From: Hyphochytrium catenoides
Taxonomy: Eukaryota; Protista; Hyphochytriomycota
Direction of reading: 5' to 3'
Length of the DNA stretch: 64,000 nt
Assembly: GCA_900088475.1 (NCBI GenBank)
Contig: FLMG01004571.1
Location: forward strand, 1 to 64,000
Numbering within the stretch: position 1 is the stretch's first letter; each line of letters starts with the position of its first letter. Below are positions 9,443 through 59,953 of this stretch, in pieces. The notes beneath the pieces were generated by a model that saw nothing but the letters and a program-made list of their open reading frames with translations, made no database searches and was not told the DNA's origin. A program made the translations under genes and the position numbers.

Positions 9443-10480
9443 TCATCGACAGTAGAAATCTCTGCTAAGAAAGGCTATGATACAGTCCCAGAGGTCTCGC
9501 GGCAAAGCTGGCTGCACTAGCCTCTTCTCTACCATTCGAAGAGTCAAAACGACAGTGTTGAACGACTTTCCAAACAGTCGAGAGCTCTGTGGAGTCCAGC
9601 AACTACTTGCCTTTCGCAGGAGGTCAGCAACCTCTGCTCTGGTTGTGAAGCTGATGATGTCTATAGCTGTTTGTCCCAGCTTATTCCTTGAGCCAATCAG
9701 CGCCTCCGTCTCTAACAGATATCGCACTAACGCTCCCGCCTGGCTCTCGCCCTGGCCACAAGGGCTGTTTCTTATGCAAACACAGCTATGCATTAGCACA
9801 GTCCAGCCTCCATGGTCTGAGGTGTTCGCGTTGGCTCCCGCTTGTATTAGGGCCTTTACGATGTGGATATGTCCCTCTTTACCTGCCGCCATGAGAGCTG
9901 TAGTCCCATAGTTATCACTCTTGTCGACCTCAGCGTTGGCAGTCTTTATTAGGTAGTCGACTAGTTCTAAGTTGCCGGACTTGGCGGCGTGGATGAGAGG
10001 AGTAACTCCGTACATATCTGCAGCAGAAACCTTGCCACCTGCTTCCACCAGTGTGTGTGCTATTTGCAGATGACCACGTAGGCAAGCCATCATAAGTGCC
10101 GTGGTCCCGCAATCTTTGACCTGGTTGACGTTGGCCCCGGCCTGCAACAGCAGCATCACGCAAGATGGCCGGCCAGCATCAACCGCAAGCATTAGCGGGC
10201 TTAAGCCGTAGTCATTGGAGCAATTGACCTCCGCTCCTGCCACCAGCAAATCAGTGATGATCTTGTCATAGCCTCTGACAGCTGCAATATGCAGTGGAGT
10301 CCAGCCACTGAGTGTCCGATAATTCACATTGAAAGGATAAGAGGCAATTTGGACCATGGCACCTCCAATCTCGCCTGCCTGGAGCAGCTTAAAAAGCGCA
10401 CTGTCGTGTCGAGCCCACCCAGCATTGGAGGCATTCTCATTAGCCCCAGTATGTTCTAGTGCAACCGCTACTCCGTCCAT
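9443..10480 (-). CDS. Ankyrin-repeat protein with C-terminal F-box-like motif, intronless
   Basis: About 7 ANK repeats (GWTPLHIAA, GLSPLMLAV, GTTALMMAC, GVTPLIHAA, GTTALMAAG...) followed by the tail LPRDLWDCIIAFL. Confidence 0.9.
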   Translation of the reverse strand: MDGVAVALEHTGANENASNAGWARHDSALFKLLQAGEIGGAMVQIASYPFNVNYRTLSGWTPLHIAAVRGYDKIITDLLVAGAEVNCSNDYGLSPLMLAVDAGRPSCVMLLLQAGANVNQVKDCGTTALMMACLRGHLQIAHTLVEAGGKVSAADMYGVTPLIHAAKSGNLELVDYLIKTANAEVDKSDNYGTTALMAAGKEGHIHIVKALIQAGANANTSDHGGWTVLMHSCVCIRNSPCGQGESQAGALVRYLLETEALIGSRNKLGQTAIDIISFTTRAEVADLLRKASSCWTPQSSRLFGKSFNTVVLTLRMVEKRLVQPALPRDLWDCIIAFLSRDFYCR

Positions 10481-20308: not shown

Positions 20309-21508
20309 CTATAACTTCTTATATTGTGAGGGGTCATTGTAGAGATATGGATTTCCTGGTGGCGGCTTAAAGTTGGGATTCTCTACATCACGAAGAGCGG
20401 GACAGACTTCGTCCGCACCCTCTGCTTCTTGCTCACAACGGCGTCCACCCAGCCAGCCAGAGTCAAAGATGCAACCAGCAGTGACGAATGAGATCCGCTT
20501 CCTTCGCGGTTCGTGCAACAGCAGACGCACCATGTCCACAAGTTGATCGTCGCTGATAGAGACTACGGTCGCAGCCCAGTTCCTGAAGAGAAGTGGATAG
20601 AGGTCCAGTCTTAGCCAGGTCTCTTCAGAGAGGAAGTTTAGGACAATCCAGTTCATAAAGTTGTCCGGCAGTCTGTTCCTCTTGATAACGTTGTCCTCAG
20701 GGTTCTTCTGGCTTCTAAAATAGCTAGTAAGGAAGGTATCTAGGCGGTTCTCGTACTCCACTCTCTCTGGCCTCGCGATTGAGCTGTACCGCCACGTCTT
20801 GACTAAGCCTTCAAATCGGTGCTGGGGGACCATGTAGGCATCCCGCGTTTTGTTAAGGTACTTTGATATCTGAAGCGCAGGTACGTTGGAGACGATCTTG
20901 GTCCGCAGCAGTCCATCAATGATGTCGATAGCCCGCACGTGCGAATACTTCCTTCTCAGGGTCGCCAATCTGTCCATGATGCCATCAGGCGAGAGAAGGG
21001 TTGGCTCTACTGTCGTCCTGACGAAGTCCCACGAGTCAGACGGGGCGAAGAAGCTAGAACTAGTAAGACGCTGCAATCGCCGGAGCTGCCTCACAAACGC
21101 TTTAGGAGTTCCCGTCCTCGTCTTGTCGAGGATAGTAAGCGTAGATCTAATGACATCCAGCTCGTTGATGCCAGCCTTGCCACACCAGGTGTTCTGAAGC
21201 ATCTCCATTGTCTCAGAGAAGGCGCATCTTGGTAGCTCTAACCTGGTTGCTGTCTTTAGGCTACTCCAGAGACTTAACACGCGAGGACTGCTTAACTGGT
21301 TGCTCTTCATCAAAGAGTTTAGCTCCATCAGCGTCTTAACCACCTGTCCGTTGGCTGGAATACCCCAATTCTCATAAGGATTCGCAGCATTCACAGGTAG
21401 AGAGAGGAATGTAGGGCCGGTAAGGGAAAGGAAAACAAGGAAGAAGAGCGACTTCCATGAGAAATGTGGCAAGCAAGAGCCCCTTGTGGCCTTGACAGGA
21501 GAATGCAT
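20309..21508 (-). CDS. Orphan protein (~399 aa), probably secreted, intronless
   Basis: Long ORF with hydrophobic N-terminus SLFFLVFLSLTGPTFLSLPVNA|AN; no recognised domain. Confidence 0.7.
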   Translation of the reverse strand: MHSPVKATRGSCLPHFSWKSLFFLVFLSLTGPTFLSLPVNAANPYENWGIPANGQVVKTLMELNSLMKSNQLSSPRVLSLWSSLKTATRLELPRCAFSETMEMLQNTWCGKAGINELDVIRSTLTILDKTRTGTPKAFVRQLRRLQRLTSSSFFAPSDSWDFVRTTVEPTLLSPDGIMDRLATLRRKYSHVRAIDIIDGLLRTKIVSNVPALQISKYLNKTRDAYMVPQHRFEGLVKTWRYSSIARPERVEYENRLDTFLTSYFRSQKNPEDNVIKRNRLPDNFMNWIVLNFLSEETWLRLDLYPLLFRNWAATVVSISDDQLVDMVRLLLHEPRRKRISFVTAGCIFDSGWLGGRRCEQEAEGADEVCPALRDVENPNFKPPPGNPYLYNDPSQYKKL

Positions 21509-21739
21509 GCTTTTCCTCAGTAGCTGCAACGTAACAAAGCACCTAGTAGGGTCCGCTTCTCTTCTTTAGGAACACCACCAACTGACAGATAATGTGATTA
21601 GCCGGTTGAGGTTCCGCTAGTAGCAAGGCAGACGCCTGGAGAAATCGGAAAGTGATGACACAGTGAAAGAGAGAAGAAAGAGAATGTTGTACGACGTGAA
21701 GGCCGCTGATGATATGTCGTTTCTAACTCTTCTCTTTCG

Positions 21740-26392: not shown

Positions 26393-29300
26393 TTAGTATA
26401 CAGGGATATCCTTCAAGTTGTTGTCGCTGGCAAAAGGACAGAAGGCCCCGAGACATTCATACTGATCCATCTGGAGAATGACGGTGAGGTTGTTACTCAC
26501 CGCTGATATTGTGGCCTCGTTATCAATTGGAAGGTCAGACTCTGGCGTGAAGAGTGAAGAGCCAGAAAGAGAAACAGGGCCCTCTCTACCCCACAGACTG
26601 AAAAGCATAGCTGCACAGGTCCCCAAGACGATGAAGCGGAGGACCCACGAAAGAACGCGATCGAAGAGAGAGTGAATCTCCCTCTCCTTCGTCTGTTCTT
26701 GCTCAATCATCTCTTTACGGTAGGCTTTCCTTACTTTACCCTTGATCTGATCGCTTACTTCGTCTCTTTGTTTGGACTGAGCAAAAAGCTCCGGAGGGTA
26801 GTCAGGATATCGTCTGACGGCTGCCGCAGCATCAACGCTTCCTCTTCTGCCCTGAAATGCGCTAAACGTCGCTGGAGAAGTCTCGGAATAGGTAGGAGGA
26901 GGAGGAAGGGCGGACGTGGACGCTGAAGGAGTTGCCATAGGAAGGTTTTCCTGCGATCTGTCCTCTCCCTCACGCTCAATATGAGCGGTGATAGAGTTAC
27001 CATTGAGCTGCGGTGTGGCGAACCTATGCGGTTCTTCCGCTCCTCTCTGTAAATCAGCGAGAGGAGTATCTAAGCGCAAGGATCCTAGGGAATTAGCGAG
27101 AGAAGTGACAGGAGTCTCTGGGACGACACCCGAAGAAAGATTGGACGGAGTAGTCTGATCATCCCTCCTGCCATCAAAATGCTCCATTCGTACAGGAGTG
27201 GACTGTTGCGCCATGATAGCGGAATCCGCAAAGTGAGCGGAGTGGGAACGTGGACTTCCAGTCGGTTTTGCTGCGTCAGCTTCCCTCTCCCCAAGGAATG
27301 GGCCTCCAAGAGCAGGAGAGGGTAGGGATGTAACTGCAGGGGAGCTCACAGCGACATCCTTTGCTGACAGCTCGTTATATTTCGCTCGAAAGCAGTAGAC
27401 AATGAGATCCTCCTTCCCTTCATAGTTCTTCAAAAACGTATCAACCTGAGATAGGAGGCTTCTGTCATGCTTCTCGAAAAGCTCCACCAATTGCTGTCGG
27501 TACCCTTCTACTCGGGGAGAAGGGGAAGGAGGAAGAGATGTAGGAAACACGCCATTAGACGCAGTAGTTAACGTGTTATCTGCACCACCAGCAGGTTGAG
27601 GCGAAGGGTTGCGAGTCTGCTTGTCCGGAGGCCCTCCGACTGATCGTGTAGAATTTGAAGGTTGAGAAAAGGTGCGAGGGAGAGAGGACAGAGCTTGTCT
27701 TCCTTCATCCTTTAGCCCAGGACCATCTTCCCCAGAGTCCGAAGGTTGCTGCTTAGGTGTGGTCATGACAGGGAGATACGTCTTCAATGTTGGGGAGAGC
27801 ATATTGGAATGCCTCTGCGGATATGCATAATGTAGGAGAAGGAAGAGCAAGTTAGAGAGAATACATGGACGAGCCCGGTAAAGACGTAGCAGGCCAGTGA
27901 GACCTCAACAGGAGATCAGGAAGAGATGTCGACAAACAGTATTGATCTTGGAGAAGAACGACTAAGCCTTGTATGATTTTATCAAAGGAAGCCCCGAGAG
28001 AAGGCTGGGAAGAAATGAGAGAGCGGAAGAGGAGTAAGTAACGGCCTACCTGCTGAAGAAGACTCGTCTTCCTATCAGTGGCAGCGCGATTCGCTTTCAA
28101 GGAGACAATTTCCTTTTCTGAAGGTGTAGAGGGAAGCTTAGTGGCAGGAAGAGACAATCTCCTTCCGGCTTTCGGTGCTGGCACGCGAGAGTTGCTTTGA
28201 GCTCCAAGGTCCTCCTTCTTAGCTTTCCACTCCAGAAGTTTTGACAGACGAGGTTGTAGCTGAAGTGGTGCGGGTTCTTCTGCTATATCATCAATTGCTT
28301 CCTCACCTACTGCCACTACCTCTTCAGCTTCAAGATCCAGCTTCTCCTCCTTAGAAACTGGTTTATCAGTCTCTTGCGCACTCTTCATCGCCGAGCTTTC
28401 TTCCTTTAAAAGGCTTAGAGTACTTCGCCGCGCGGCTGAGAGCGGAACTGATATCTCGATCTATTGTAAAACAGAATTAAGCAAGCCAAGACAAAGCGTG
28501 CATTTGAGCAAGGTTACCTCTTCCAGAGGGGACATCATCCCTCCTTGCTTACTCCTGAACTCTGCCTTTCTTTCGCCTAGTGATGCTCGCTTCGCCTTAA
28601 TCTTCGTTGGGTCCACGTACTTCGACTGATAGAGTGACACCAAAAGAGAGTCTGGGTGTTCTCTTTGAAGGTTGGGCCAGACGGCCTTGTCCACTACCTT
28701 GGCCACCTCCTCCATTTGTTCCGGCCTGCCGATAGGTAAGGACAGCGTAAGGTTATGGAGAACAAGGGGATAAGAGAGAGCCATGGAGAAAAGGAGATAA
28801 GAGAGAGCCAACACACAGTCCTTGCAGTGGAAAGCCTACTGAACAACCAGGGCGAGTTATCTAAGGTACAATCGAAGAGAGCCCTACCATTTCTCGGTGT
28901 AAAGGACCAAAGCGGCCCTTGCGAATTTTCTTGCCTCTTCCGCTGCGTCATTGGTTGCTTTCTGCAGAGTGCGGAATAGACTCTCCACTTTGTGGGTGGG
29001 AAAGGAATCCTTGGACCAGCATCGTAGGATGATTGTCAAATACTCGACGCATCGAGTCCGATAAACGGCTGATGAAAACGGCAGTTAGTGTCACCACAGC
29101 TACGTTAGCGAACGCAAAAGGACAGAACCAAGGGACGAGGACAGCAAGACTCAACAGCTGGGACAGTATAGCACTTGGTAAGTGATCACTCTCCCTTTAC
29201 CTGACTTATTGTTCTGAGCTCCTTCGAAGAGGACAAAGAGGTTGCTGATCTTGGAATGCTCTAAGATGCACTTAATGCACTCATCGCAGGACTGAGACAT

Positions 29301-32428: not shown

Positions 32429-35359
32429 TTATTGTCCTTCAGCTTCTTCTTGTTCGTCGTGGCCTTCTTCGTCTTTCATGAATTCGTCTAGAGGGGGAAA
32501 GCTCAATCCTAAACTCTGCGCAAGGCCGGCAAGCCTCTCGGCTATCACTTCTGCCTCTCCCTCCCCAGTCTCAATCTTGCTATGCTTCTCCCTGGNNNNN
32601 NNNNNNNNNNNNNNNNNNNNNNNNNNNNNNNNNNNNNNNNNNNNNNNNNNNNNNNTAGGATTGTTGCAAATGGCACATTGAGGGTAGTTGTCTAACAGCT
32701 CGAGCAGATGTTCGTTGAAAGCTGTCAGAGCTTCCAACAGCCTGACTTGCTCATGCTCCTAAGATAGACTGGTTAGCTACCGCTATGAAGAGGGTTGGCG
32801 GAGTGAAGGAGACAGCAGGAGAATGGGCATAGCGCGCAAAATGAAAATGAATTTAGCAAAAAACCACCCCTGACCTTGCGGTGATCCTTCGCCCTCTCCA
32901 GAGCAATGCGCTCTCTCTCAACCGCTGCATTGAGGCGCTCAATCTCTTGCCTCGAGGGCCCGTCGTATGGCTTGGTAGCCACCACAGTGAACTCCCTCCC
33001 GCAGGCAACTGCCAATTTTAGAATAGAGAGCTAAACAGGAAAGTAGGGCCTGTTGATGATAAATGAAGCTGAAGGTACCTGACGCTGCCTTTCCCACTCC
33101 AAACGTGTCTATAAGACCCTCGACAGGTCCAGGAACCGCACAGAAAGGCTCCTCCTGGTCGCCTAGTTCCGAAGGGCGACCCAAACAGCCATTCACGTTA
33201 CTTCCCCACGTATAAACCTGCACCAGAACACGATAAGAGTGACGCAAGGCTAACCTTATTAACTCTGTTCCTCTCTTCTTTGCTTTTCATTGCTAGTCTT
33301 CCAGGGACAGACGACAACGCGAAGTTCCAACTACAGATCACTCACCTCATCTTTTAGCGTCAGGGCTGCGTTGTGGTACATGCCAACTGCCACATACTTG
33401 ACGAGCACATGAGTATCTACTAGATCTTGGACGAGACCAGGGGTGAGGGACACTTGTACCCCACCTTGGCCCAACTAGAATAAAAGTGTGCCGCGGAGTC
33501 CCGAAGCATTGGCATCAAAAGAGAAGAAGGGCGTTACGTATGTGCGAAATATTAGAGGAGGCCGATATCAGAATCATCATGAAGCAAGAGATACTCCCTG
33601 CTGAGAGGGAGTGATGGTACGATTGCTGTGACTCTTGAAGTAAGTTGGGTCTCGTTACCTGGCCAGATCTTCCTGAGATGTCATCAGTTTCACGGTCGCC
33701 ATAAGTTCAAGAGATAGGAAGCGAACAGCAAAGAGTCCAGCTGGTCAATTGAATGACCGGAAGAAACTGCAGCATGACGATCCAAGGAGGTACCTGTGCC
33801 CCAGGTGTACACCCATCCTGCCTTCGTCATGGGAGGTACTAAGACTATGGCAGTCGAATGCCAAACAGAACAAGCCACTTGAATAACTACTTCTCCTACG
33901 TTGAACAGGGCGGTCAGAAAAGAAGTATCTTCCGAGAGAATAGAAAGAATAACAACTAGATAGCGCAGGGAAAAGGCAAAGCTAATGAGAAGAAAGAAAG
34001 AGAGAAATTGACAGACAGAAAGAGAGAGCGGGGGCCCACTTCAAGTGAGTAGGACTATAAGCAAGAAGGAAGCCCTAACTTCGAGAACTATTCCCTTGCC
34101 TTTGAGCTTTTCTACTTGGCGAGGTGCGTTAACTGACTTGGAGTCTCCGTGGCCAAGTCTCCTAAGTTTGGTTTCATAGTGAGTCCTTTACGGTTCTCCC
34201 GGTAGCTGCTTCTTTAGCATGCTTCCTCTTAACTTTGCTAAGCCCTTCTTTGTCTCTCTCTTTCTGGTCACTACTCTTGCAGATGCTCCTTACCCTCCAT
34301 CTCCAGAACCCCAGGTCCATATCTCACTCTGGTCGGTCAACAGAGCGCAGTGGGTAGCACCACAGGACACCTACAAACACGGAGGAAATACAGACGGTCC
34401 ACAGAATTGCGATGCCGAGAGTCAGAAAGGCAGCGTAACTCCAGGCAAATGACCAAGCGGGCTTTGTACTTCATTGCGCTACTCGCGTCACAAGACCCAG
34501 ACAAGGAAGGCAGGAAGCAATAAGAGACCTCTAAACAAAGAAGGGGAACAGGAAAAAGCGGTATGGGACGTACCTGCTTAACAATCTTGCTCTTGAAGTA
34601 GCTCGTCAGGTCCAGCTGAGAAGCGCTGCCACCCGTGTTACCCCACACGAACAGCTGATCTACAGGGTAGAGATAGTAAGCTTGCCAAAGACCGATCCCC
34701 ATTTAGTAACATAAATTGGGCATCTTGCGGAAGTAACGATCTACGTCGGGATGAGGCCGTAGTAGGCTATCGTGTTTCGTCACTTAGGGATAACAAGGCC
34801 AAAATGGTTACTACTAGCCAGGAAGATAAGCCTGGTTTACCTACCGTCGTCAGTGAGAACGAATGATTGAGAAGTACCAACAGCACACGCGACAGCGGCA
34901 GAAGCTCTGGGAAGCGATTTTTCTAAAAGGCGTGGTTCCGGGCAGTCTCGTCCTCCTAACGCTTTCCTGTCTCCCGCCTCCTGTGAGTACGACGCATAAA
35001 TCCATAAACAGAGAAGGTCAAGGTTTTGCAGATAGATTGCGCCCTAAGAGAGCTAAGAGAGCATGAAAAGAATCATTGAGTACTTACTCCTCCTTCAGGA
35101 AGTGGTGGGACAGACTCTCTAATAAGAAGGTGAAATAGCTCATTGCCGAGCTGCTGGTGTGAGTTCTGTTGAAAGAAATGTAGGAGGAAGAGAATCCACG
35201 GTCAATTTGGATAATCAACGGGGCCTTCAAGGTTGTCCAACGGGGAAGACACGTCTCTCTTAACGAGACAAGACAAGAAAGTTGGAAATCAGAGTGCTAC
35301 GGACTTTGGACGTTTCAGGCGGTCGTCAATCGGCTTTAAGATCTCCTTATCCTTCTCAT

Positions 35360-37985: not shown

Positions 37986-39498
37986 CTTGACAAGAAAGAT
38001 AAGGAGGTAGTAGAAGAAGCAGGAGCTAAGAAGGGTAGTGCTTGGAAGAACCTCAGAGGAGCATGACCGACACCTGCTGCAGAAGGTGATTGGAAGGCAG
38101 ATGACCGTCGATGACATTCATTGGTCTGCCGCAAGTACTTTCTGCAAGATCAACAACTGAGTGACCGTAGACAAGGGCTCCTAGCTCCGTCGTCACATCA
38201 GCAATATTTGTTCTATCAAGGTAGTGCTCCTACTGTCACCATCCTGGTGTCATTATCGCTGCCGCTGTTCTCAAGCAAGAAGCGTTGCTCTAGCAGCCAT
38301 CTTATGCCTCCTCCGTCCGCCTGTTGAAGCTTGGCAGCAGCGGCTAGCAGCTCAAGGGGAGACAGTGGCTGAACTTATAAGACTCGTCTTCTCCTTCCAG
38401 GCAGTAGTTCTCCAGAAATACTACGGACAACCTTGATTGGGTCTAGTACTCTGAGGAGCCCTAGCAGCAGCAGATGTTGAGAGCATTGAGTCAAGCGAGA
38501 AGAGAAGGGGCAAAGAGCGGAGGGCATGGTAGCAGCAAGGCCTAACGCAGGCTGACTGACGAGCAGTGGTGAAGGTCGGGAGAGAACAAGCAGATGGGCG
38601 AAGGCTGAAACGACACCGACGAAGTATTATACAGAATAACACATCCTTTGTGCCTTTTATACTCGATAGATGCCAAGTCAAAACGTTGTATTGTGATAGG
38701 TCATACCTTGGCCGTTATTTCCCCTTTATGGACATCCGAAGCAGCGGACCACCAGCAGCCAGATGATGTCCTTCTATGTGCCCTTGCCTGCTAGAGGAGG
38801 AGCTGTAAGAGGTCATCTCTCCTCTTCTCATCCCGTGGTTGACCAGTTGGCGCTGCTGCAGGTGATAGCACGAGTTACTTGGAGGCAGGGACAAACACGT
38901 GCACTACAAAGCCAAGTTCCTGTTAAAGTTTAATCAGGGTATTGGAAATTATCAGGGTGGAGGACACGTGACTAGGGGAAGCAAACTATCCATCGTCACC
39001 CAGCTCGCCTTCCTGCCTCTTTATGACAACAAGGCTTTGATGATGGAGAGGTTCGACTGCCAGCTAGTGTCAGAGGTTATCGTAGCCGCTCCTACAGCAG
39101 ATGGAGGGATTGAGTGTGAAGAGGTTACTATGATATAACGCTAGCGCAGGAAGGAGGTGGAAGTTTGGGCGGTAGAATATCACTTGAGATTCATCATTGG
39201 GAACGCTTATCAGCGAGTATCTATAGCTAACCTATAAAGGGCTGAAGGACATCCACCTACGACTCCGTCTTCTCTGACCCCGCAGGGACATGGTGCGGAG
39301 AAAACTTAATGGGCCGAGAGATGGGTGGAGCGTTTGGACTGTCTGAATAGATTGATAAGTTACTATACACATGCCGCCTGTTGACAAGGCACTGAAGAAC
39401 GGACAAGAGGAAAGGAAGACGTAGGCTCTAGCTTTGTAGAGGTCCCCCAAGGACCATCATGCTAATTAACCGTCGAGGGTTAGTGGACTCTGTTGGCT

Positions 39499-40323
39499 CT
39501 AAAAAGAGTCAGCGTTGGTGAAGGTACTGCCGACGGAGGTCTGGGAGTTAGATCCGGTGGCAATAGGCTTGGCAACGTAGAGTCTGCCCTTGACGAAGTA
39601 GTACAGAAGAGGGACATCGACGTATCCTGACGGAACGCCCTGCGCAGTGCTTCTAGAAGCAGCCTTTTGGCCGTTGACGATGTTAAAGCTAGAACCCTTG
39701 GGGCCGCCTTGGATGCCGACGATGCCGCCTAGGAGGGGGAGATACTGCACGCCAGTTGACTGACCTTGGACTCTTTCCAGGGTACCAGAGGAGGTTTGTG
39801 TGGCTCCTGAACCCTCAGTGGCACGAATATCAGCGATAGCATTGTTCTGATAACCAGACTGGTAAACGATGTCCGGAGTAGAGTCAGTCCGGGTAGGGCC
39901 CTGGACAGCGATGGTTGAACCTGCGTTTTGGTTAACCCCAACGGCGACATTGACCTCAGAGGGCGGTCCAAGATGAAGGAAGCCGCCCTGTTGAGCTAGG
40001 GGTCCGTTCGATTCAGCTCTAGCTTCGCCAACCAAACTCTGCGAGATTGTGTTACCCTGGGGCCCTGACTCGACGTGAGCTGCCGTATCCATGAAGCCCT
40101 GTGCTTGACCATTAGCACCGCTGCTGTGAACAGCTTCAGATTCAGCCTCTGAGTGACTTTGTTGATCCATCGATGCCTGACCCGGTTGCGCTCCTCCAAA
40201 GTCAACGCTGTTCATTAAACCATCCAAGTTGAGAAGACCGCGGAAGTTGCCGGACTCTGCAGCGGAGGACCCAGCAGCCATCCCAAGTAGAAGAAGGCAT
40301 GAGGCGGTAGAGCAGATCTTCAT
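39499..40323 (-). CDS. Secreted G/S/Q/A-rich protein 'A' (274 aa), intronless; paralogue of 48654-49475
   Basis: Signal peptide MKICSTASCLLLLGMAAGSSA, then NFRGL; aligns end to end with A'. Confidence 0.88.
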   Translation of the reverse strand: MKICSTASCLLLLGMAAGSSAAESGNFRGLLNLDGLMNSVDFGGAQPGQASMDQQSHSEAESEAVHSSGANGQAQGFMDTAAHVESGPQGNTISQSLVGEARAESNGPLAQQGGFLHLGPPSEVNVAVGVNQNAGSTIAVQGPTRTDSTPDIVYQSGYQNNAIADIRATEGSGATQTSSGTLERVQGQSTGVQYLPLLGGIVGIQGGPKGSSFNIVNGQKAASRSTAQGVPSGYVDVPLLYYFVKGRLYVAKPIATGSNSQTSVGSTFTNADSF

Positions 40324-42743
40324 GCTGAAAGAGTAGTTATCGTCGAGAAGATGGCTGCTTAAGAAGGAAAGAGGGTTTGAGACTTAAGCTAGGAGCTAGA
40401 ATGAGAAGCAGCGTGCTCCTTTTGTCTTGAATAGAAGTTTGAGAGTGAAAGGCTGGGGCGTCTGCCAGCATCAGTCGCCCAATAACCAACGCCGAATAGA
40501 CGACAAGCAGACAAGCCTTATGCAGTCAACATTACCAAGGGTGAAGAGAGAGCAAGCGAAGAGGGGATGTAGAGAAAGGCCGGAGGTGGGAAAGTGCAGT
40601 TCAAGGTACGGCTCGAGGAAGAAGAAGCCAGGCCAAGAATAGCTTTCGCCTGTGGTCTTAAAAATGGCAGAGTAGGAACAGATACAGAGACAGCTCTCAA
40701 GCAAAGTTTTCTTCTCAGCATCTTCCTGACCTCTTCTTTCAGGAGAAGGTTTCTATAGTACGTCTCCACCTGTGCCTGCATCAGTAGCAGGCTTAGGTGT
40801 AAAGAGAGACACGGAAAGAACTAGAGAACGGAAGATCTTCAGAGGTTGATGCCGCTCTGTCCTTTCGTGCTTTCCGGACACTCCTTTCTTAGGCTTTCCA
40901 TTCCCCCGCGTGAAGAACATGGGTATTTTCAGGTCGCCTTTCCATGTCCACTTCCATACGTCGCCTTCTGCCCTCCGACGTCCAAAAGCACATCACTCAA
41001 TGATTACCATGCACTTGTCGTCCATTCATTTGTAAGGAGCTACGCTGCTGCCCCTACCTCTGTCTTCGCTCAACTAAAACTTTTAGGAGTATCAAGGTTA
41101 TTTGTCGGGATTAATAGGGCATTCGCCTGTCTCGCGATGAGCTCCCTGTACCCTTGGCCTTATACTCAAAGAAAGGTTCTTCCTTGTCCCATGAAAAATA
41201 AACAATCGCGAGGCGCTTTTACATTTGCAACCCCCTGAAGCCTAGTCGGAGCATTCCAGTCCTTGTGGGACTGTGTGGGAAGCAGACCTTATCAAGATGG
41301 GTCCAAAGGACTAGAAGGCCAAGCAAGAGTCGGAGTGCTCAGATTCTCTGAAGGTGAAATCACTGTGCGGTATCGTCAAGGTGTTCAGTAAGCCGCACCG
41401 GATGGGAAGGAAACTGAATATTACCAGTTCTAGCTGTAGAGCAACCCCAACGAAGCAGGAGGAACAGTCTGAATCCTTTCATTGTGCCAGTGGTCTCTTA
41501 TACGGGTGAGTACGGTTCGGGTCAGGTACTCTTGCTGCGATTCCTAAAATGTCGGACTTAGTAGTAGCCTGATAGCAATGAAGAGGAACTCCCACTCTGC
41601 CATCATGCATTCCTTGCGCCGCTGTGTACAGCAAGCCGACTACACGTGTGCGGTCCCACCTAGTCCGTATGTCTTTCTTCCATTAACCCCGCAAAAGTGG
41701 AATGGCCCCTTCCCTACATTTGTGATGAGCAGCAGTATAAAGTGAAGCCAGAAGAAGAGCCTCCCTCATGAAAGGACCAACTGCCCACTGCTGCCATGTC
41801 GATACGATTTGCCTCGTTCTCTCTGCAACTCGTCTTCTGGGCCCTGTGTTCCCTTCTCTCTCTTTTACTCTGTCTCACTCCCTGTCTTAGTCTCACGCAC
41901 TGCTGCTCTCCAGCTCTCTCTAGACGTCCGCCTGTCTCTTCCGTTCTATTCTTTTTGATTTTTTTTCGTTATTCCATTATGTCCGGATCTGCACCCGATG
42001 CTTAGGTCAGAGGTAGCAGCTTGCTCGGACGAATTGTCATAATTTCAGTGCAAAGGCTGACTACTTTCGGCAACTTACCATATTCTAGGAACAGCCAGGG
42101 CCCCATTACTGTTTTGCCATCACTCTCTCCGTGCTACCTTCGGCGAGTCAAGTGAATCTGCTTCTCTGTGAGGATTGTCTAGAGGTCCCGAGGCTGGGAC
42201 TTCTGTCTCAATCCAGCGTACGGACGCGCACGTGAGCGGAAGAAAGAAGGGAGAGCAGGCTAAGATATCAAGGAAAAGGATAGAGAACGTCCGATTCTCT
42301 GCCCAGACAGGGCAGGAAAGCTACGGACAAGTCCTCTTCATCTAACCTGACACTGTCAACGTGAGTTTCAAGTCAAAGCTGTTTCCCTTTGCTCAACGTC
42401 TCTAGAACTACAGTCCAGGTTTTCGAGCCCAAACCCTCGTGGAGGGTGAATATTCTGGCTTCACCTATGTAAAGAGATAGGCAAGCTTCTCGCCTGGTAG
42501 AACCAGCACTAGGTAGAGGCGAAGTGGGGGCATGCCACTGCCTGCTATCTCTCTCCTAGCTGGGGCATCACTTGGACCTCGCACAGGAGGCTCAGCATCA
42601 TCCCAGGTCAAGGGAGCATTGGAACACATCTCATTAGACTGTTTTCCCGATACTCTGCACTACTGCTCAGACTGCACCGCCATCTCTCAGCCACTTAGTG
42701 CTTGTATTATCCATCAAGTCAACCAAGGAAAGCCGTCTGAAGC

Positions 42744-43235
42744 ATGAAGCTGATCAACTTTGGTCTCTTTGCTGTTCTTGCCATCACCGCATCAACTCAT
42801 CTGGGCTCGGCTGCAGAAGTCGCAGATGCTGATGTGTGGTACACCCGTGCTGCCTATGAAGGCTGCAAGAACAAGAACGCCACTCTCCCAATCGCTTTAC
42901 CTGTCATAAACGTAAATGTCACCGGAATGGTGTGTGTAGACAAGTTGGAAGACGTATGTGGCAGTTCAAAGTCAGGGAGAGCTTGCCCTGAACTGGTCGA
43001 CAGTACTGGTCAACCTCGGAAAGAATTCAAGATCGAGTGCAAGGCTCTACAAAATGAGATCAAGTGTGTATTGGGATCCAACGCGGCAAAGAGTCTGGCC
43101 GAGTTGCCGGAGCATGTGGAGAAGGATTTAATTTCTGCTTCCCTCGACGGCAAAGACTATGATTGGGAAGTAACCGACGCCATGACCAACGAAGTTGTTA
43201 TGGTTGTTCCTGCTCCCGAGCACACTTCAGTGTAG
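42744..43235 (+). CDS. Small secreted Cys-rich protein 'B' (163 aa), intronless; paralogue of 44966-45400
   Basis: Signal peptide MKLINFGLFAVLAITASTHLGSA; Cys spacing C-x22-C-x7-C-x8-C-x17-C-x8-C. Confidence 0.88.
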   Translation: MKLINFGLFAVLAITASTHLGSAAEVADADVWYTRAAYEGCKNKNATLPIALPVINVNVTGMVCVDKLEDVCGSSKSGRACPELVDSTGQPRKEFKIECKALQNEIKCVLGSNAAKSLAELPEHVEKDLISASLDGKDYDWEVTDAMTNEVVMVVPAPEHTSV

Positions 43236-43539
43236 TTTTACTGACGACTAGCAGGCAGGAGAAGAAGACCTTCTTCGCAAAAGTCTGACGAGAATAGTGG
43301 ATGCGTGGCTGCCGTCAACACAGAGTCGTTTCGGCCTTGTCAACATCAGATTCTCCCTCTGTATCGCTTGCACCATTTATTCCGCGTGAAGAAGAGAACA
43401 TTATGATATCCCAACAAGGTACAAACCTTGCACATCAAGCTTGTCGGTGCATGCCGAGTTATGGAAGTGAGAATTGTCTGTTCATCTTGGGCTGCATATC
43501 TCTCTGGAGCGATGAAGAAGCCTTTCGATGGCTGATAAC

Positions 43540-43624
43540 TGTTGACGATGTCCTGCTTACATCGGGTTAGTCCTGTAGAGTTTGCAGTGGGTATGTAACT
43601 ATGTGAAAAGTAATGAACTAGCAT
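43540..43624 (+). repeat. Left arm of a diverged inverted repeat (3' region of B)
   Basis: tgttgac...tgtagagtttgca...atgtaactat...aaaagtaatgaactagcat matches the reverse complement of 44716-44797. Confidence 0.65.
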
Positions 43625-43943
43625 GTTTCCCGTAGTTGCATGCGCTATTCAGGTCAGTAAAAAGCCACTCCTTGAAGTCATCGCAGGGCGATTAAAGCCA
43701 GGAACGTTCGTGATGCTTTATATTATATGGGCCTTTACAGGTCTACAATCGCTCGTCGCACCACGCTTTCGCCTACCGACGACAAACAGACACTCTCGAT
43801 AACAATTCTCCTCGAAGTAGCTGCCGCTGCTGCTTGTCGATTGCTGCTGCTGCTTTTTAATATTATGAAGGCTGCTGGTAGGGTGGTCGCGTCGTCGTCG
43901 TGTACCTCTCTCACTCTCCTCTCTCCTCTACATTACGTGCGAT

Positions 43944-43944
<1 letters not shown>

Positions 43945-43975
<31 letters not shown>
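43945..43975. repeat. (CT)n microsatellite near the centre of the mirrored cassette
   Basis: ct run. Confidence 0.95.
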
Positions 43976-43977
<2 letters not shown>

Positions 43978-44626
43978 TATCGGCGTGTGTCTACTCTCTC
44001 TTCTCCTCTTGTTCTTATCTCTCTCTCTATCTGCAGTCTCTTCTTCTGCCCCTATTATGCTGAAGGGTAGGATGTAACAGTCGTCTCTCCTTTCTTCTTT
44101 TCTCTCTCCTCCTCTGCTGTCTGTCTGCTGTGTCGTGGGTCGCCTCCGCAACTTCGCTCCTTCGCTTGTGGCTCTGCCTCCCTCTCCGCATCTATGGATT
44201 GATATAAGCTTATTATCAGCCCCAATCCACGGCCCTTCTTCTCTCTCATCATCGCTCTCTCCCCTTAATCTTCAGCCTTGGAGCTACTACTCTTTATAAA
44301 CGAGTAAAGGTCTTGTCTTCTGAGCAGGGCTTGTTGGTCCTTTGAAGAAGAACACGCTCAAACCTAGTGCTCTTAGAGCTTATTGATCCAATTCGTAAAC
44401 AGTGTGAGAGCTCCTATGTCTCCTTTTGAGTGGTGGAGACGCAGAGTTCCCTGCAGACCATCTATGTCCTTCCTATGTTAGCTCAATATATAAACGTTCT
44501 CTGTCCTTCCCAAGCCTGTCTTTTCTTCTTTCGTGTTGCTGGGTGCAGACGTAGTAGTCTTGGCAATATCCGACAACGCCCTGCCACCAACTTTCTAGTC
44601 TATCTTTCTCTATAACAGCAACCCAG

Positions 44627-44707
44627 NNNNNNNNNNNNNNNNNNNNNNNNNNNNNNNNNNNNNNNNNNNNNNNNNNNNNNNNNNNNNNNNNNNNNNNNNN
44701 NNNNNNN
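44627..44707. other. Assembly gap (81 N)
   Basis: N run. Confidence 1.
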
Positions 44708-44715
44708 GCTGAAGG

Positions 44716-44797
44716 ATGTCACTTCATTTAGTTTTATAGGTACATGGCAGGTGCAAATACTACATGGCTACCGACTGGATTATAAGTACTGTCAACA
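44716..44797 (-). repeat. Right arm of a diverged inverted repeat (3' region of B')
   Basis: Minus strand reads tgttgac...tgtagtatttgca...atgtacctataaaactaaatgaagtgacat. Confidence 0.65.
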
Positions 44798-44965
44798 ACT
44801 AAAACACTTGTAAGGCGTCACACATCTTCCTCCTCAACAGCAGTCATCAGCTACCTCTTGGAGCGTCGCAGAGAGATGAAGAGCAGAACCTGCAGAGTGC
44901 TCTCTATTCCAGCACCTCGCATGGGATGATCTCACTGCTTCAGTCCAATATCAGCTACTGGATCT

Positions 44966-45400
44966 TTACTGCTGATCGCACTTCAATGGCTCACCATCTT
45001 CCGAGGTAAGAGAAAACTCTGGATTCTGGTCTAGGAAGTCGCATCCATCTTTTGGACTGACAGGCAGAACACACTTGGGATCATCTTTGTCTGGCTGAGT
45101 CTGGCAAACTGTGGCGATGTACGAGCCCTCCTTAGCTTCGCCGTCCGGCTTTGCCCAAATTTTGGGGCAAACGCCCTTCACGTTCTTTGGGCCGCATGCA
45201 TCACTAGCCTTCTTCACACATACCACGCCAGTGCCTTCTTCCTCGGCATATAGAGAGATTGGGACAGTGACTATTTCGTACTGGCAGCCCTCGCGGTCGG
45301 TCTTGGTTATCAGCTCAACCCCCTTGCCTTCAGCGGAGCCGAGAAAGGGTGATGCGGCGAGCGCAAGAAGAGCGAAGAGTCCGAAGTTGATCAGCTTCAT
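44966..45400 (-). CDS. Small secreted Cys-rich protein 'B-prime' (144 aa), intronless
   Basis: Signal peptide MKLINFGLFALLALAASPFLGSA; Cys spacing C-x21-C-x7-C-x8-C-x20-C-x10-C plus 2 extra Cys. Confidence 0.88.
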   Translation of the reverse strand: MKLINFGLFALLALAASPFLGSAEGKGVELITKTDREGCQYEIVTVPISLYAEEEGTGVVCVKKASDACGPKNVKGVCPKIWAKPDGEAKEGSYIATVCQTQPDKDDPKCVLPVSPKDGCDFLDQNPEFSLTSEDGEPLKCDQQ

Positions 45401-45471
45401 GGTACTGGATTGAGAATGTAGAATGGGCCACAAGTTGGTCGGATGCTTGTTAGTTGTGAAGATGAGGCTGG

Positions 45472-45487
45472 AAATTTGAGAATGAGA
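45472..45487 (-). promoter_or_regulatory. Oomycete-type Inr/FPR core promoter-like element upstream of B'
   Basis: TCTCATTCTCAAATTT is a 14/16 match to GCTCATTYYNCAWTTT, ~70-90 nt upstream of the ATG. Confidence 0.55.
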
Positions 45488-46708
45488 TATAGTGGAGGAG
45501 CACTTGCACTGCTGCGGCTGGTGGTTCCAGCGATGACTTGTCCCTTACCGCCTGTGGCCAGGTGTACCAGCAGAGGGCAAGGCAGCTATATGCGAGGGTC
45601 TCGATTGAGCCCAACATCCTTGAGTCCGCAAAGAAAGAAAGATGACAGGAATGGCGCTTGGCAGTTGACCCTCTTACACCCTCTAAAGAGAAGAGAAAAC
45701 ATTAGGAGTCAGGAAGAGAATATGAGGAGTCGGTGCGATGAGAAAAACGCGCAAAAATAACTTGCCTTTCATCGAGTCTGGAGTTAACGTTCCACTTAAG
45801 GGGAGAGAGATTCGGACCATCGGAGAGAGGGTTAGTCCTTCCCTAGTAAGCGTCACAATGGGAAACGAAAGGTGAGAGAGTTCAGCCCTTGTCTTTCCTT
45901 TTATCAGAACTATCCTCCTTTATCACTGGCTCTTAACCACATAGGCGGGAGAAGGGTGGCCCTTCTCACGTTATTTCTCAATGGGGCCAGTGTAGAGAGA
46001 CAGGAAAGTCCAGGTTGTTGGAAGTGACAAGGGCATAGGCAGAACATATATCCGGATTATGAGGGCTCCAATTGAGTCTTTCGTACGGTCCTCCCTAGAG
46101 TCGGATAAAGTGCACGCTTGATTAAAATAAACAGAAGTTCTAGAAAGGCCCACTTATGACTGTCGTCGTGTTTACCCTTGCCAACCGTATAGGTCTGATC
46201 AAATAATGCTAGTAGAACTACTGAGGAGCTTGGAGTTGGTCCGCCGGATGTGGCAGGAGAGACGCACCTCCTTGAAATAGCAGTAAAAGGCGTGGAGTCG
46301 CAAGAGCAGTAGTTCTATATCTGTAAGCATGTCGAGGACCGTAATCAGTGGACTGGCTCTGCTCCGACCACTTCTACTCAAGGCCCATCAAAGCTTGCAA
46401 CCCTGGGCCCCACAGGTGCGGAGTAATGTGCGGTCTCCATACAACTGTAGAACTGTAGAACTCTCCTGATACACGGATTACCATTCCTACCGCGAAGCCT
46501 CTATATTTTTTTGCCTCTTCTGTGGATCCTTAGACTCACTTTGGGTCCAGATCCAGAGCTCCGCACCTACTTCTCAATGACCATCAGGCAGTAATAAGGC
46601 AGGAAAGTACAGATAGTGGTCTAGTTCTATGCTCATCCTCTCCCTTGTCTATTTTTCCTAGTGGAAAGCAGTAGAGAAGTAGCGCTAAAAGTGTTAAGAA
46701 CCGCAGCG

Positions 46709-46905
46709 CTCCTCACCCTCCCACCAGAGATCGTAAGGCAGACTTGCACCTGCCTGATGACGAAGAAGCCGGACCAAAGTCTGGCCCACCATTTATTTGA
46801 ACAGGACACTCCTTTCTCTCGTCGACTTCTTCTTGCCACCACTCTTAGTTAGTGTCCTTCTCGGAAGCATGGCTCAAGGATGTAGCACTGTCATATCTAG
46901 TGAGG
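46709..46905 (+). pseudogene. Possible F-box gene remnant
   Basis: LLTLPPEIVRQTCTCL, then after a frameshift LVSFSEAWLKDVALSYL; no intact ORF. Confidence 0.3.
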
Positions 46906-46982
46906 CAGTCAACTTTCCAGAATTACACGGAGATAAAGCAGTTCAGAGTAAAGAAGCAGAGCGGTAACGAAAGTAGAACTAC

Positions 46983-47020
46983 CTCTTGCCATCCAAAGCA
47001 CTCTTGCCATCCAAAGCACC
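46983..47020. repeat. 18-bp tandem duplication
   Basis: ctcttgccatccaaagca x2. Confidence 0.9.
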
Positions 47021-48087
47021 ACCTACTACTATTGAGTAACTGTTTATAAAGTCGGCAGCCTCCCTACATCTGTGCTCAAAATGGCTAAAGGTTGACTTCA
47101 CTCTTGCATTCCTCGACAACATCGCTCATGATAGAGTTAGTGAGGGCAGACAAAGAAGTCAGACAGACCTATTGGCGATGGTGCTCCTGTAGTTCTACGA
47201 CTTGAAAATATCTCGACCAAGCTTCCGCTCTACATAATGAGCTCATAACAAGGCTTGCTTGTTGTGATGAACCAGTTCCTCTTTAGTAGTGCCCCGTACC
47301 CATAGGACAAAACGGTAGTGTGGCAGAAGAGTCGGTAGTTCTACTCAGCCATAAGTCGACGACCAAGTGTCCAAAGCAAAGTCCAGTCTGACAGGTAGAT
47401 GTTCTTGCCACTAGATAAGATTTTATTAAAAAAATAGCTGGCGCTTTAGACTCTGTCTACTAGCGGCAGAATCTTTCTGGACAACAACAGAGGCCAAACA
47501 GAGGAACAGTGAAAGAAGAAAGAAGGGAACCGAACGTGAAACCTAGAAACCTCTCCGAAACTTTTGTGGCCTTTCTCTTGCTTGAGACGGCGGGAGTCAG
47601 AACCCGTGCCCTTTTTTTGGAGGTAGAGTACCGGACCGTCGCCTTTCTCTTCATCATGGTTCTTCTGACGCAGCAACAGGTGATGGGAGAGAATGCTTTC
47701 TAAGAGCTTCAGAAGAGTGTGGGGAAGAATAGAATATAGAAAATGGTACCTGTACTAGATGGGAAGAGAGGCTGTGGGCGGAACAAGCTGGATAGTACCA
47801 GACCATGACAAAGTCTTGAAGTCAGACACTAACTCATAGAGGAGGTAAGGAATGAAAGGGTGTCCGGTACCTGTACTTAAGAGCCAGTGGTGGCTCTGTG
47901 CTCCGATTGTTGATGTGCAGTTGTCAATTGTCGCTAGAACAACAGGCAGGGAGAGAACGCTAGTGGGGCAAGAACATGTATGCTAATAACGGTCCTCGTC
48001 AGAGAGGAAAGAGTTAAGGTCTTTCTGAGAGGGTGACTCCCTTGAGGAAGAAATACGGATCAGATTGTAAGGACAGGGAAGGCGCGG

Positions 48088-48188
48088 GTGTTCGGCAGAA
48101 GGGGCATTCGGACCCTCAATCATGTTCTCTGGTAGAAAGGCGGAGGTGTTCGGTCGAAGGAGCATTCGGACCCTCAATCATGTTCTCT
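48088..48188. repeat. ~57-bp-period tandem duplication upstream of A'
   Basis: ggtgttcggcagaaggggcattcggaccctcaatcatgttctct / ggtgttcggtcgaaggagcattcggaccctcaatcatgttctct. Confidence 0.9.
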
Positions 48189-48531
48189 ATTGCGCAACAC
48201 GGCCCTTCTGATTGTCCGAATACTACTCCACAGAAGAACTTTGTGCACCGCTTGACTTGAAAGACATAGGAGAAGCCCTCACAGGCCTGCGGAGGCAAGC
48301 AGCGGTGCTCCAACAGGAGTTAAGTCAGCTTCCTCTGCGTCCCTCTCTTTCATGCAGCAGCTGCTCTATTCCTCTCCCTACACCCTCTTCTGTTGCCGCT
48401 CGCCATGCTAGCGACAGTCTTTCGAGGACCTCGGCTCTTTCTTGTCTCTCCTATTCCTTCCTGCCTTCCTTCCTTTGCAAATACCCTTCGTGTTCAGCCA
48501 GGCCCGTCCCCTGAACACCGCAACCACATCT

Positions 48532-48547
48532 ACTCATTCAACAACTT
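48532..48547 (+). promoter_or_regulatory. Inr/FPR-like element upstream of A'
   Basis: ACTCATTCAACAACTT is a 13/16 match to GCTCATTYYNCAWTTT, ~110-120 nt upstream of the ATG. Confidence 0.45.
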
Positions 48548-48653
48548 CCCATCTCCTGAGCACTTCCAAGCCAACTCGCAACAACACCTTCCTATTGTCC
48601 AGCTAACAAGCTAGCAGAAGCCGACAGACTTCTCTTTACAATCAACTCTTAAC

Positions 48654-49475
48654 ATGAAGATCGCATCCACCACCTCAACCCTTCTCGTCCTGGCCCTTGC
48701 TGGCGCCTCCTCAGCTGCCGCTACCAGCAGCAACCTTCGTGGCTTGGAGTTCAACTTCGGTGGCCTTACCATTACCACCCCTCACGGGCTCGATGCTTCC
48801 GCCACCGGTCAATTCCAGGGTGGCTCTAACTCTGAGACTGGCGGTTGCTCAAACGGTAACTGCGTACAGTCATCTACCCAGAGCATTCAGCAAGGAAGTG
48901 TTACCAGCTTCAACGGAGAGCAGGCCTCCATCGGTGGCCACGCGTTTGGTGCCGCAGATGCCACCACCCAGACCACTGGCACTGACCGCACAGGTGAACT
49001 TTTCCTCGGCCAGCCTCATGTACCTTCTACGGTTATGACCGCCTCTGCACGCAACGCAGACACCTTCGCTGGTGTAGCATCCACCCAGTTCGGCAATGGG
49101 GACGTTTCCATCATTACTGACCGCAATGCTGTGGCGGCCACGACTGGTGTCACCAACTCCGGCCTGATGGCTACCTATTCTAACACCAAGACCATTGACA
49201 CTGCCTCGGGATCAACCACTGGGGAGAGATTCCTTAACCTCCCCTTCTTTGGATTTGGCCTAGCCATCAAGCTTCCTGGATTGAAGGGCGCCAATGCCAA
49301 TGTCATTAACGGCCAGCAGTCCTCCAGTTCTGCCACTGGTGGTGCTCCTCAGCTGCCTGGCATCCCTATGTCCTGGCCTCTTAACCTCTTCATCAAGGGC
49401 CAGTGGTACCAGCTCACTCCTACCGCCCAGACTTCCACCTCCACTGCAAACAGCGGAGTTCGGCTTAATGCTTAG
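48654..49475 (+). CDS. Secreted G/S/T/A-rich protein 'A-prime' (273 aa), intronless
   Basis: Signal peptide MKIASTTSTLLVLALAGASSA, then NLRGL; strong bias to C/T-ending codons. Confidence 0.9.
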   Translation: MKIASTTSTLLVLALAGASSAAATSSNLRGLEFNFGGLTITTPHGLDASATGQFQGGSNSETGGCSNGNCVQSSTQSIQQGSVTSFNGEQASIGGHAFGAADATTQTTGTDRTGELFLGQPHVPSTVMTASARNADTFAGVASTQFGNGDVSIITDRNAVAATTGVTNSGLMATYSNTKTIDTASGSTTGERFLNLPFFGFGLAIKLPGLKGANANVINGQQSSSSATGGAPQLPGIPMSWPLNLFIKGQWYQLTPTAQTSTSTANSGVRLNA

Positions 49476-58248: not shown

Positions 58249-59953
58249 TCAAGGATGCACCGCGCTAATGGGTGACATAGCTGAAAATGCTCTCGCTGTC
58301 TTCTTCAGCCTGAGAGCTTCTTCTGCTCGTCTTAGGGCCTCTCTTTGACAATTGCTAACCTGCCTCTTGACAGAGTCCTGACTAGCGATAGAGTACGCAG
58401 CTGCTTCTCTCTGCCTCAGGCAGAGATCGCCCACCTTGAGAACTATATGTCTCAGAAAGCATATTGCAAAGAAAAAGAAAAACACAATCCCCACACAGAT
58501 CACCACCACCTGAATTATGGGCACGTGGTCACTCGTTGAAGGAAGCGGCATCCTCTCCCCCGACGGGGTCATAAGTCCAGCGCTGACTAAATCCTTTCCT
58601 CGGACATTTAACGAGACAGACAGCATTGGAGAGGAGGAGAAGAGAATCGGGGATACCACTCTAAGAAAGCTTTCGCCGAAGGCCCATAGATTGTCAACGC
58701 CTCCTTCTGCGAAAGTGGTGCCCACCATAAAGGTGTACGTGCCCCGACAACCTGTAGCGGAACTCCTCCAAAAAAGCTCATCCTGAGAGACAGAGATGCT
58801 TGTCTCCGCTCCGCTGCCATCCACAAGTTCCACATAGAGATGGCCATGGAGCTTGTCAGGACAAACGAACATACCCCGATCCAGACAGGTGGGTTCAAAC
58901 TCACATTGCTTCTCAAGAAGTTTTGGGAGAATATTTTTGGAGAAGGTCTCGTTATCCAAGAAAATCCCCAACAAACCGCTGTCAAGGACGGCCACCTTCT
59001 TGTGCAGTCTAGTTGTTCCTGTTTTGGCCCAAGCCCTATGCTTTCCAAGCGACAGGACAAAATCGAGATGGCTAACTTGAACGGACCAGTGGTTAGGGTC
59101 GGCAACCTCTAATGTCTGCCAGGAGCAACCCTTCCTATCAAAACAGTCCGCAGGATCGTAACCCCCGATTACGATGGTCGAGCTCACTTGGCCGCTGCTG
59201 TTACTATAGTGCCAGCTGAACGTGTCCATGAAGCCAGACGACGCCCGCTGTGACTTTGCAAGAGGTTGAGGAGGGGCAAGACCCAAGATGCCATCGTAGG
59301 GCCAGGTTCCAGTTTGAATGTGATCTTTGATGGCTATCCGCTGGACCAGGGCCATGGAGAGCGGAAGGCTCCTCCCTGCCACCAAAACCTCCTCTTCGAG
59401 CGGCTGGCCCTGAAGAGTTTTTCCCCGGTAAAATGCTTCTAAGGGACAGTTCGTACAAGGAGCGCTAGTACAGTTGTGTCCATGACAGTCCGACAAATTG
59501 CCTGGCCGATAAGAACCTGCGCTTTCCTTGGTACACAGAGATTTGAAGAACGTCAGCATTGACCCCGACACAGAGTTGTAGATTAGGGTTACCTGCTTGC
59601 AGGGAAGGCACCAATACTCTAACTTGTCTCCCTCCAATCGATGCTGCCGGCATGCTTGACAGTCGTTAGAGAGGACCCATACTCCAACGATACCTGTTAT
59701 CACATAGATAGAGTGGATGAGTGCCCAAAAGACTAAGTGCACAGAAGAAGAAGGACCTACTAGTGTCAAAAAGCATTTCATATGATTCCTGTCCAACCGT
59801 CACCGTTCCTAGATATCCACCAAACACCGTACCGCTCCTGTTGCCCTCTAGTCGGAAGAAGCGTGACTTCACTTGTGTGAATGGCTTCAGGCTAATCTGG
59901 TGGGCGCCCGTAGGTTGGGGCTCATCCCATGCTGATCTCTTCCGCAGGCTCAT
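58249..59953 (-). CDS. Pepsin-family (A1) aspartic protease-like protein with C-terminal TM; 5' end uncertain
   Basis: YLGTVTVGQESYEMLFDT|SIVGVWV, DGILGLA, IVIGGYD, HWSV, AVLDSGL, WAFGESFLR and TM IIQVVVICVGIVFFFFFAICFL. Confidence 0.8.

Follow-up and report, generated by a model that had tools for sequence, protein, structure and literature searches.

In a 64,000-nucleotide (nt) stretch of the Hyphochytrium catenoides genome (contig FLMG01004571.1, positions 1 to 64,000, referred to below as the window), we confirm that a pair of neighbouring orphan genes for secreted proteins was duplicated in mirror image long ago, an event that is ordinary in kind. The four genes, which we call A, B, B' and A', are arranged as A(-) B(+) B'(-) A'(+), so that both their order and their orientation are mirrored, with A and B divergent in both arms. 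The explanation that we consider probable is that an orphan pair of secreted-protein genes was duplicated in inverted orientation long ago, that A is a wall- or matrix-type protein and B a disulfide-stabilised one, and that A is paired with B in each arm as a co-duplicated neighbour.

Gene A (39499-40323, minus strand) was read as an open reading frame (ORF) of 274 amino acids (aa) with a signal peptide of about 22 aa, and gene B (42744-43235, plus strand) as an ORF for an acidic, predicted secreted protein of 163 aa. Their paralogues are B' (44966-45400, minus strand), which is 144 aa long when counted from the ATG homologous to that of B, and A' (48654-49475, plus strand; 273 aa). The divergent genes are separated by 2420 nt in the A-B spacer (40324-42743) and by 3253 nt in the B'-A' spacer (45401-48653), while B and B' are 1730 nt apart, counting an assembly gap between them. 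When the two outer spacers were scanned for ORFs, those found within them were short and noise-like, and none was convincing. A sequence-only reading of this DNA had previously listed four signal-peptide ORFs with spacers of 2.4 and 3.25 kb, and we reproduced the coordinates and lengths of the ORFs and measured spacers of the same size. All four ORFs begin with ATGAAG, and the G+C content of the genes (0.50-0.57) is the same as that of their surroundings.

In each of the four proteins, a hydrophobic N-terminus closes with a small-x-small cleavage motif (SAA, AAA or GSA) and is followed by a polar mature start. No later hydrophobic segment of membrane-span length and no hydrophobic C-terminal tail was found in A, B, A' or B'. 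Based on these N-terminal features, we infer that all four proteins are likely to be secreted.

The outer genes are paralogous to each other, as are the inner ones, which agrees with what had been proposed from the sequence. A and A' share 29% identity in BLASTP (E 2e-9) and 33% over the full alignment, and B and B' share 44% identity over their first 84 aa (E 1e-12, BLASTP) and 36% over the full alignment. The two pairs have therefore diverged to a like degree (33% versus 36%, full alignments), as expected for a single event. A and B show no similarity to each other, and no internal repeats were found in A or A'.

The resemblance within each pair is unevenly distributed. Between A and A' it reaches significance in three places only: the signal peptide, a short motif right behind it, and the C-terminal third of the protein, where the alignment scores a z of 12.8 against shuffled sequences; the N-terminal and middle thirds of the mature protein (z of -0.5 and 1.2 against shuffles) have no significant similarity. 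B and B' have kept the signal peptide and a six-cysteine core (about residues 31-112), and their C-terminal tails differ. The signal peptide is the best-preserved part of both pairs, with 18/24 identical residues versus 32/115 in the rest of B/B' (Fisher 3e-5) and 15/24 versus 70/233 in the rest of A/A' (Fisher 0.002). The mature proteins had been described as strongly diverged, and this holds for most of mature A and for the tail of B, but not for the C-terminal third of A or the six-cysteine core of B, which are conserved.

At the level of DNA, the matches between the two arms are few, and every one of them is inverted. They include 74 nt of signal-peptide codons in B/B' (81% identity) and 76 nt at the start region of A/A' (70% identity). 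Upstream of the ATG, in comparisons of A with A' and of B with B', alignable homology ends at the start codon in both pairs, and no mirrored match was found between the 2420- and 3253-nt spacers. In the mature regions of both pairs, synonymous change has reached saturation: identical codons at conserved mature residues number 31 in A/A' where 26.6 are expected, and 13 in B/B' where 14 are expected at saturation. The signal peptide of B/B' has a mild excess of identical codons (11/17 versus 6.1 expected, P 0.015). Because synonymous divergence (dS) is saturated, the ratio of nonsynonymous to synonymous divergence (dN/dS) is not estimable for either A/A' or B/B'. Reading frames of 144-274 codons have stayed open despite this saturation, which implies that each of the four genes has been under selection; 274 codons would be free of stops by chance with a probability of 2e-6.

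The whole layout is explained by a single inverted duplication of a segment holding A(-) and B(+), and, judging from the divergence described above, the duplication must be very old. An old inverted duplication with both copies kept intact is also what the sequence-only reading had concluded, and that conclusion is upheld by the mirrored paralogues, their similar divergence, the saturated sites, and the finding that the genome holds no further copies. In the mechanism we propose, one ancient inverted segmental duplication would have copied a segment of ~4-5 kb in which two secreted-protein genes, unrelated to each other, restricted to the lineage and transcribed divergently, were already present. 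The product would have been A(-) B(+) joined to its mirror image, B'(-) A'(+), and selection would since have kept all four genes while the bulk of each mature protein drifted or diversified. Eukaryotic microbes have other local inverted segmental duplications, head-to-head or tail-to-tail, that involve genes for secreted proteins and likewise consist of mirrored paralogous pairs around a unique center. The locus described here differs from these in that each arm holds two unrelated genes, the duplication is very old, and 4/4 copies are intact.

Homology between the arms also extends into non-coding DNA. A match between 43540-43624 and the reverse complement of 44716-44797 had been noted from the sequence, and it is real, with a global alignment score of 24 versus -10 +/- 4 for shuffled sequences. 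The homology reaches further than had been described, to ~190 nt, in conserved blocks that align with each other 3' of B (about 43440-43625, plus strand) and 3' of B' (about 44716-44900, minus strand), the latter ending 9 nt from the assembly gap. TGTAG, TTTGCA, ATGTA and AATGAA occur in the same order in both blocks. We found no conserved RNA structure in the downstream block, and no Rfam family either there or anywhere in 38-51 kb. The block is a putative 3' untranslated region (UTR) or 3'-end-processing region of the two convergent genes. A 10-mer, GTGTATAGTA, had also been reported as shared, and while it is indeed present downstream of both A genes, this is a chance-level match (estimated at ~0.2 for two 450-nt stretches).

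The arms also share a 23-mer, located at 39153-39175 on the minus strand, 324 nt downstream of the A stop codon, with a partner at 49420-49442 on the plus strand, within the coding sequence of A'. The two copies match at 22/23 positions, are mirrored like the genes, and are the only two in the 61-Mb genome; their flanks do not align. In the C-terminal coding sequence of A' the 23-mer reads TAQTSTS, and downstream of A the same frame reads TAQTSTSFLR followed by a stop. The patch may be the trace of a micro gene conversion or a shared RNA element. We considered whether the downstream copy could be a 3' exon of A and tentatively rejected this, since on our reading of the sequence a TGA lies two codons upstream in frame and no AG acceptor is seen between this stop and the 23-mer.

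The B'-A' spacer contains two repeats of its own. At 48079-48188, ~470-570 nt upstream of the A' start, there are two direct copies of a 52-nt unit that are 90% identical and have a 58-nt period, with no counterpart upstream of A. At 46983-47018 an 18-nt unit occurs twice in tandem without a mismatch.

The two arms meet at an assembly gap (44627-44707) of 81 N, an estimated length, that falls in the non-coding DNA separating the 3' ends of the convergent genes B and B'. The gap is not crossed by any ORF, so none of the reading frames relies on it. On its B side it follows about 1 kb of low-complexity DNA rich in C and T. Such DNA, including a (CT)n microsatellite, occupies 43900-44300 in the center of the mirror structure and may explain why the assembly broke at this point. 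A second gap in the window (32596-32655, 60 N) is outside the four-gene locus.

Given that the gap sits at the center of symmetry, the mirror could in principle be a scaffolding artefact, in which the arms are real paralogous loci that are not adjacent and have been brought together by a wrong join at 44627-44707. The H. catenoides assembly, of a diploid genome, was built with Platanus into 4758 scaffolds plus the mitochondrial genome, and it is short-read only, as its authors could not obtain long DNA (PMC5795050); they report SNPs at a frequency of about 0.0275 per scaffold. Together with the C/T-rich DNA ahead of the gap, this speaks for a wrong join. However, with a best match between them of 81% over 74 nt, the arms differ far too much for read pairs to have been misled, and both flanks of the gap are single-copy in the genome, with no other contig bridging the gap in a search of the genome's contigs. 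A random mis-join that unites, out of 61 Mb, the only copies of two families in exact mirrored order would be most unlikely, and the unique, mirrored 22/23-nt patch that is common to the arms suggests that sequence has been exchanged between them. We therefore consider a scaffolding artefact very unlikely.

The A-type proteins have an unusual composition. Gly, Ser, Thr, Ala, Gln and Asn make up 57-62% of A/A' (57% of the mature part of A), charged residues are few, and the isoelectric point (pI) is acidic to neutral. Mature A has no cysteine, and A' has two close together, at 65 and 70. Neither protein has any N-x-S/T sequon, compared with 6.9 expected from composition (joint shuffle P 0.00045, in a post hoc comparison), and this absence fits passage through the endoplasmic reticulum with selection against N-glycans. 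Directly after the predicted cleavage site, both proteins have the motif N-[FL]-R-G-L-x-[LF]-N-[LF]-x-G-L, encoded at 40240-40260 on the minus strand in A and at 48720-48745 on the plus strand in A', which could be a pro-peptide or a sorting motif. The conserved C-terminal module is ~85 aa long and strand-prone. An AlphaFold2 model of A was uninformative, with a predicted local distance difference test (pLDDT) score of 27, and its sole elements are three strands in the C-terminal module.

Our best guess is that the A-type proteins are extracellular, glycan-free, low-complexity proteins of the wall or matrix type, and that the C-terminal module would serve in assembly or attachment. With the Ser/Thr/Gly-rich wall or mucin-like proteins of fungi and oomycetes, in which tandem repeats and glycosylphosphatidylinositol (GPI)-type tails are common, they share a signal peptide, low complexity and few charges. 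They differ from these proteins in having no tandem repeats, GPI-type C-terminus or sequons, and in having a C-terminal module of their own.

B is of a different type. It has six cysteines, at 41, 64, 72, 81, 99 and 108, and all six are kept in B', which has two more, so that the pair shares the frame C-x(21-22)-C-x7-C-x8-C-x(17-20)-C-x(8-10)-C. Both proteins are acidic (pI 4.5-4.8), and B has an acidic C-terminal tail of ~50 aa that is not conserved in B'. The AlphaFold2 model of B has a pLDDT of 50, with 55-73 in the core, and contains two beta-hairpins. No match to this model emerged from comparisons with other structures: the best E value from Foldseek against the PDB was 0.37, the Atlas shape search gave TM values of at most 0.35, and the VIA wide search gave a Z of 2.1, from a model that is too weak to judge whether the fold is novel. 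Judging from composition, our best guess for the B-type proteins is that they are small, secreted and globular, with disulfide bonds stabilising the fold and a tail that varies.

Elicitins and PcF/SCR-type proteins are small, cysteine-rich secreted proteins of oomycetes, and B resembles them in its signal peptide, small size and six cysteines, as well as in coming from a related stramenopile lineage. In contrast to them, B has no match in Pfam (E <= 1), in the protein libraries or among structures. Other families combine a conserved signal with a hypervariable mature part, such as the conotoxins and frog skin peptides. The MgCRP-I peptides of Mytilus mussels are described as having the same architecture as B, in which the signal is conserved and the cysteines are fixed while the mature part has diverged (PMC4558851). 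Like the members of these three groups, B and B' have a near-identical signal peptide, six invariant cysteines and diverged mature sequences. They differ in having only two members, in being longer (120-140 aa mature) and acidic, and in coming from a saprotrophic protist, and we identified no pro-peptide cleavage site in them and no sequence relationship to these groups. B and B' thus show the conserved signal and invariant cysteines by which cysteine-rich peptide families are recognized, but with two members they show no multigene expansion.

These likenesses raise the possibility that at least the B proteins are independent, fast-evolving, effector- or defence-like secreted proteins under diversifying selection in microbial competition, with A a mere neighbour. 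A signal peptide that is far better conserved than the mature part would fit this idea, as would the 81% DNA identity and the excess of identical codons in the signal region, the six invariant cysteines, and the architecture shared with the mussel peptides. On the other side, there are two members and no expanded family, the saturated dS leaves dN/dS not estimable, and an acidic pI is unlike that of most cationic antimicrobial peptides. We regard an effector- or defence-like role as unlikely.

We looked for relatives of the four proteins within and beyond this genome. In the 61-Mb genome (4759 contigs), the A and B families consist of 2 + 2 genes only, according to protein, profile, DNA and degenerate motif-pattern searches, and a search for the signal-peptide cassettes at other genomic sites found none. 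None of the four proteins matched a Pfam family at E <= 1, which means that elicitins and other Pfam-defined cysteine-rich secreted families were unmatched. A word-indexed search of a 5.8-billion-protein index with A, B and the B profile found no relatives, and HMMER, run exhaustively on 1.84 billion representative proteins with the profile of A/A', gave 0 hits. ESM Atlas feature searches, in which A, B and the C-terminal module of A served as queries, gave no usable match, the A and B profiles gave only chance-level rows against PDB sequences and nothing in the JGI metagenomes, and an exact-sequence look-up of A found no record. A search for further linked A-B pairs had been suggested as a check on the locus, and there are none in this genome and no relatives in the protein libraries searched. 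To our knowledge, no other genome has been sequenced in the hyphochytrid group, so orphan secreted genes are to be expected and are not in themselves a sign of a new system.

The sequence-only reading had gone further and proposed a co-regulated module that would fit cognate pairs or a heteromeric assembly. In a cognate-pair explanation A:B and A':B' would act jointly as a two-component extracellular system, in which A might, for example, be toxic or assemble with itself and B might serve as its partner, cap or inhibitor or confer immunity to it, and the duplication would have created a second, co-diverged pair. The features consistent with such a system are the divergent, neighbouring positions of A and B in each arm, the intactness of both members of both pairs despite saturated synonymous sites, the similar degree of divergence in the A/A' and B/B' pairs, and the restriction of both families to this locus. 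All of this support, however, follows from one duplication event (n = 1), and co-duplication of neighbours yields a mirrored layout with or without a functional link. No element of the promoters or spacers, and nothing upstream of the ATGs, is conserved between the arms, which leaves the proposed module neither supported nor refuted. The spacers of 2.4-3.25 kb exceed, in our judgement, the length of a typical shared promoter, and, with no homologues found elsewhere, the sole linkage of A with B is the duplicated one. A prediction of the complex between A(185-274) and B(25-163) scored 0.14, which is no answer and counts neither for nor against binding.

Two-gene secreted partner systems such as binary toxins and toxin-immunity pairs are similar to this locus in that adjacent secreted-protein genes have been duplicated and retained together, but A and B have no homology to any such system in Pfam, PDB or library searches. 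We consider it unlikely that A and B form a cognate system of this general kind. A specific version, in which A and B are cognate partners of a hyphochytrid-specific extracellular two-protein system, for example with B controlling, capping or neutralising a self-assembling, glycan-free A through the A C-terminal module, and in which the mirror duplication led to two mutually specific pairs, is in our opinion quite improbable. The long retention of all four genes does leave room for a functional link, and for this reason we keep the cognate-pair explanation at a low probability rather than dismissing it.

We return, then, to the ancient inverted duplication of an orphan gene pair, in which the pairing of A with B would reflect neighbours that were copied together and not a demonstrated partnership. 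Several points weigh against this explanation. Retention of both duplicates of both genes exceeds what a random pair of neighbours usually shows. The adjacency of the two arms depends on the scaffold join across the gap, and the gene models, both ORFs and UTRs, are known here from DNA alone. For the A proteins, the uninformative model leaves the wall or matrix role to be argued from composition, and the tandem repeats and GPI-type hydrophobic tail that are common in wall proteins are missing from A. On present evidence, we regard the locus as an ordinary lineage-specific gene cluster, for which a two-component system is possible but unsupported.

The neighbouring genes in the window are ordinary eukaryotic ones. 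Based on Pfam matches, they include a ZIP zinc transporter (1907-3004, plus strand; E 1e-39), an ankyrin-repeat protein (9443-10480, minus strand; E 3e-44) and the splicing factor CWC25 (11348-12010, plus strand; E 2e-13), and there is also a kinase fragment. Further long ORFs in the window, at 58249-59796, 26393-27850 and 20309-21529, have no Pfam match.

Hyphochytrids are a poorly studied sister group of the oomycetes, and this locus adds to their secretome two protein families that have no detectable relatives. It also provides a clean case in which an inverted duplication is very old and yet neither arm has lost either of its genes. As such, it is a compact test case for asking whether genes that are retained together are functionally coupled, and why a signal peptide can outlast the mature domain.

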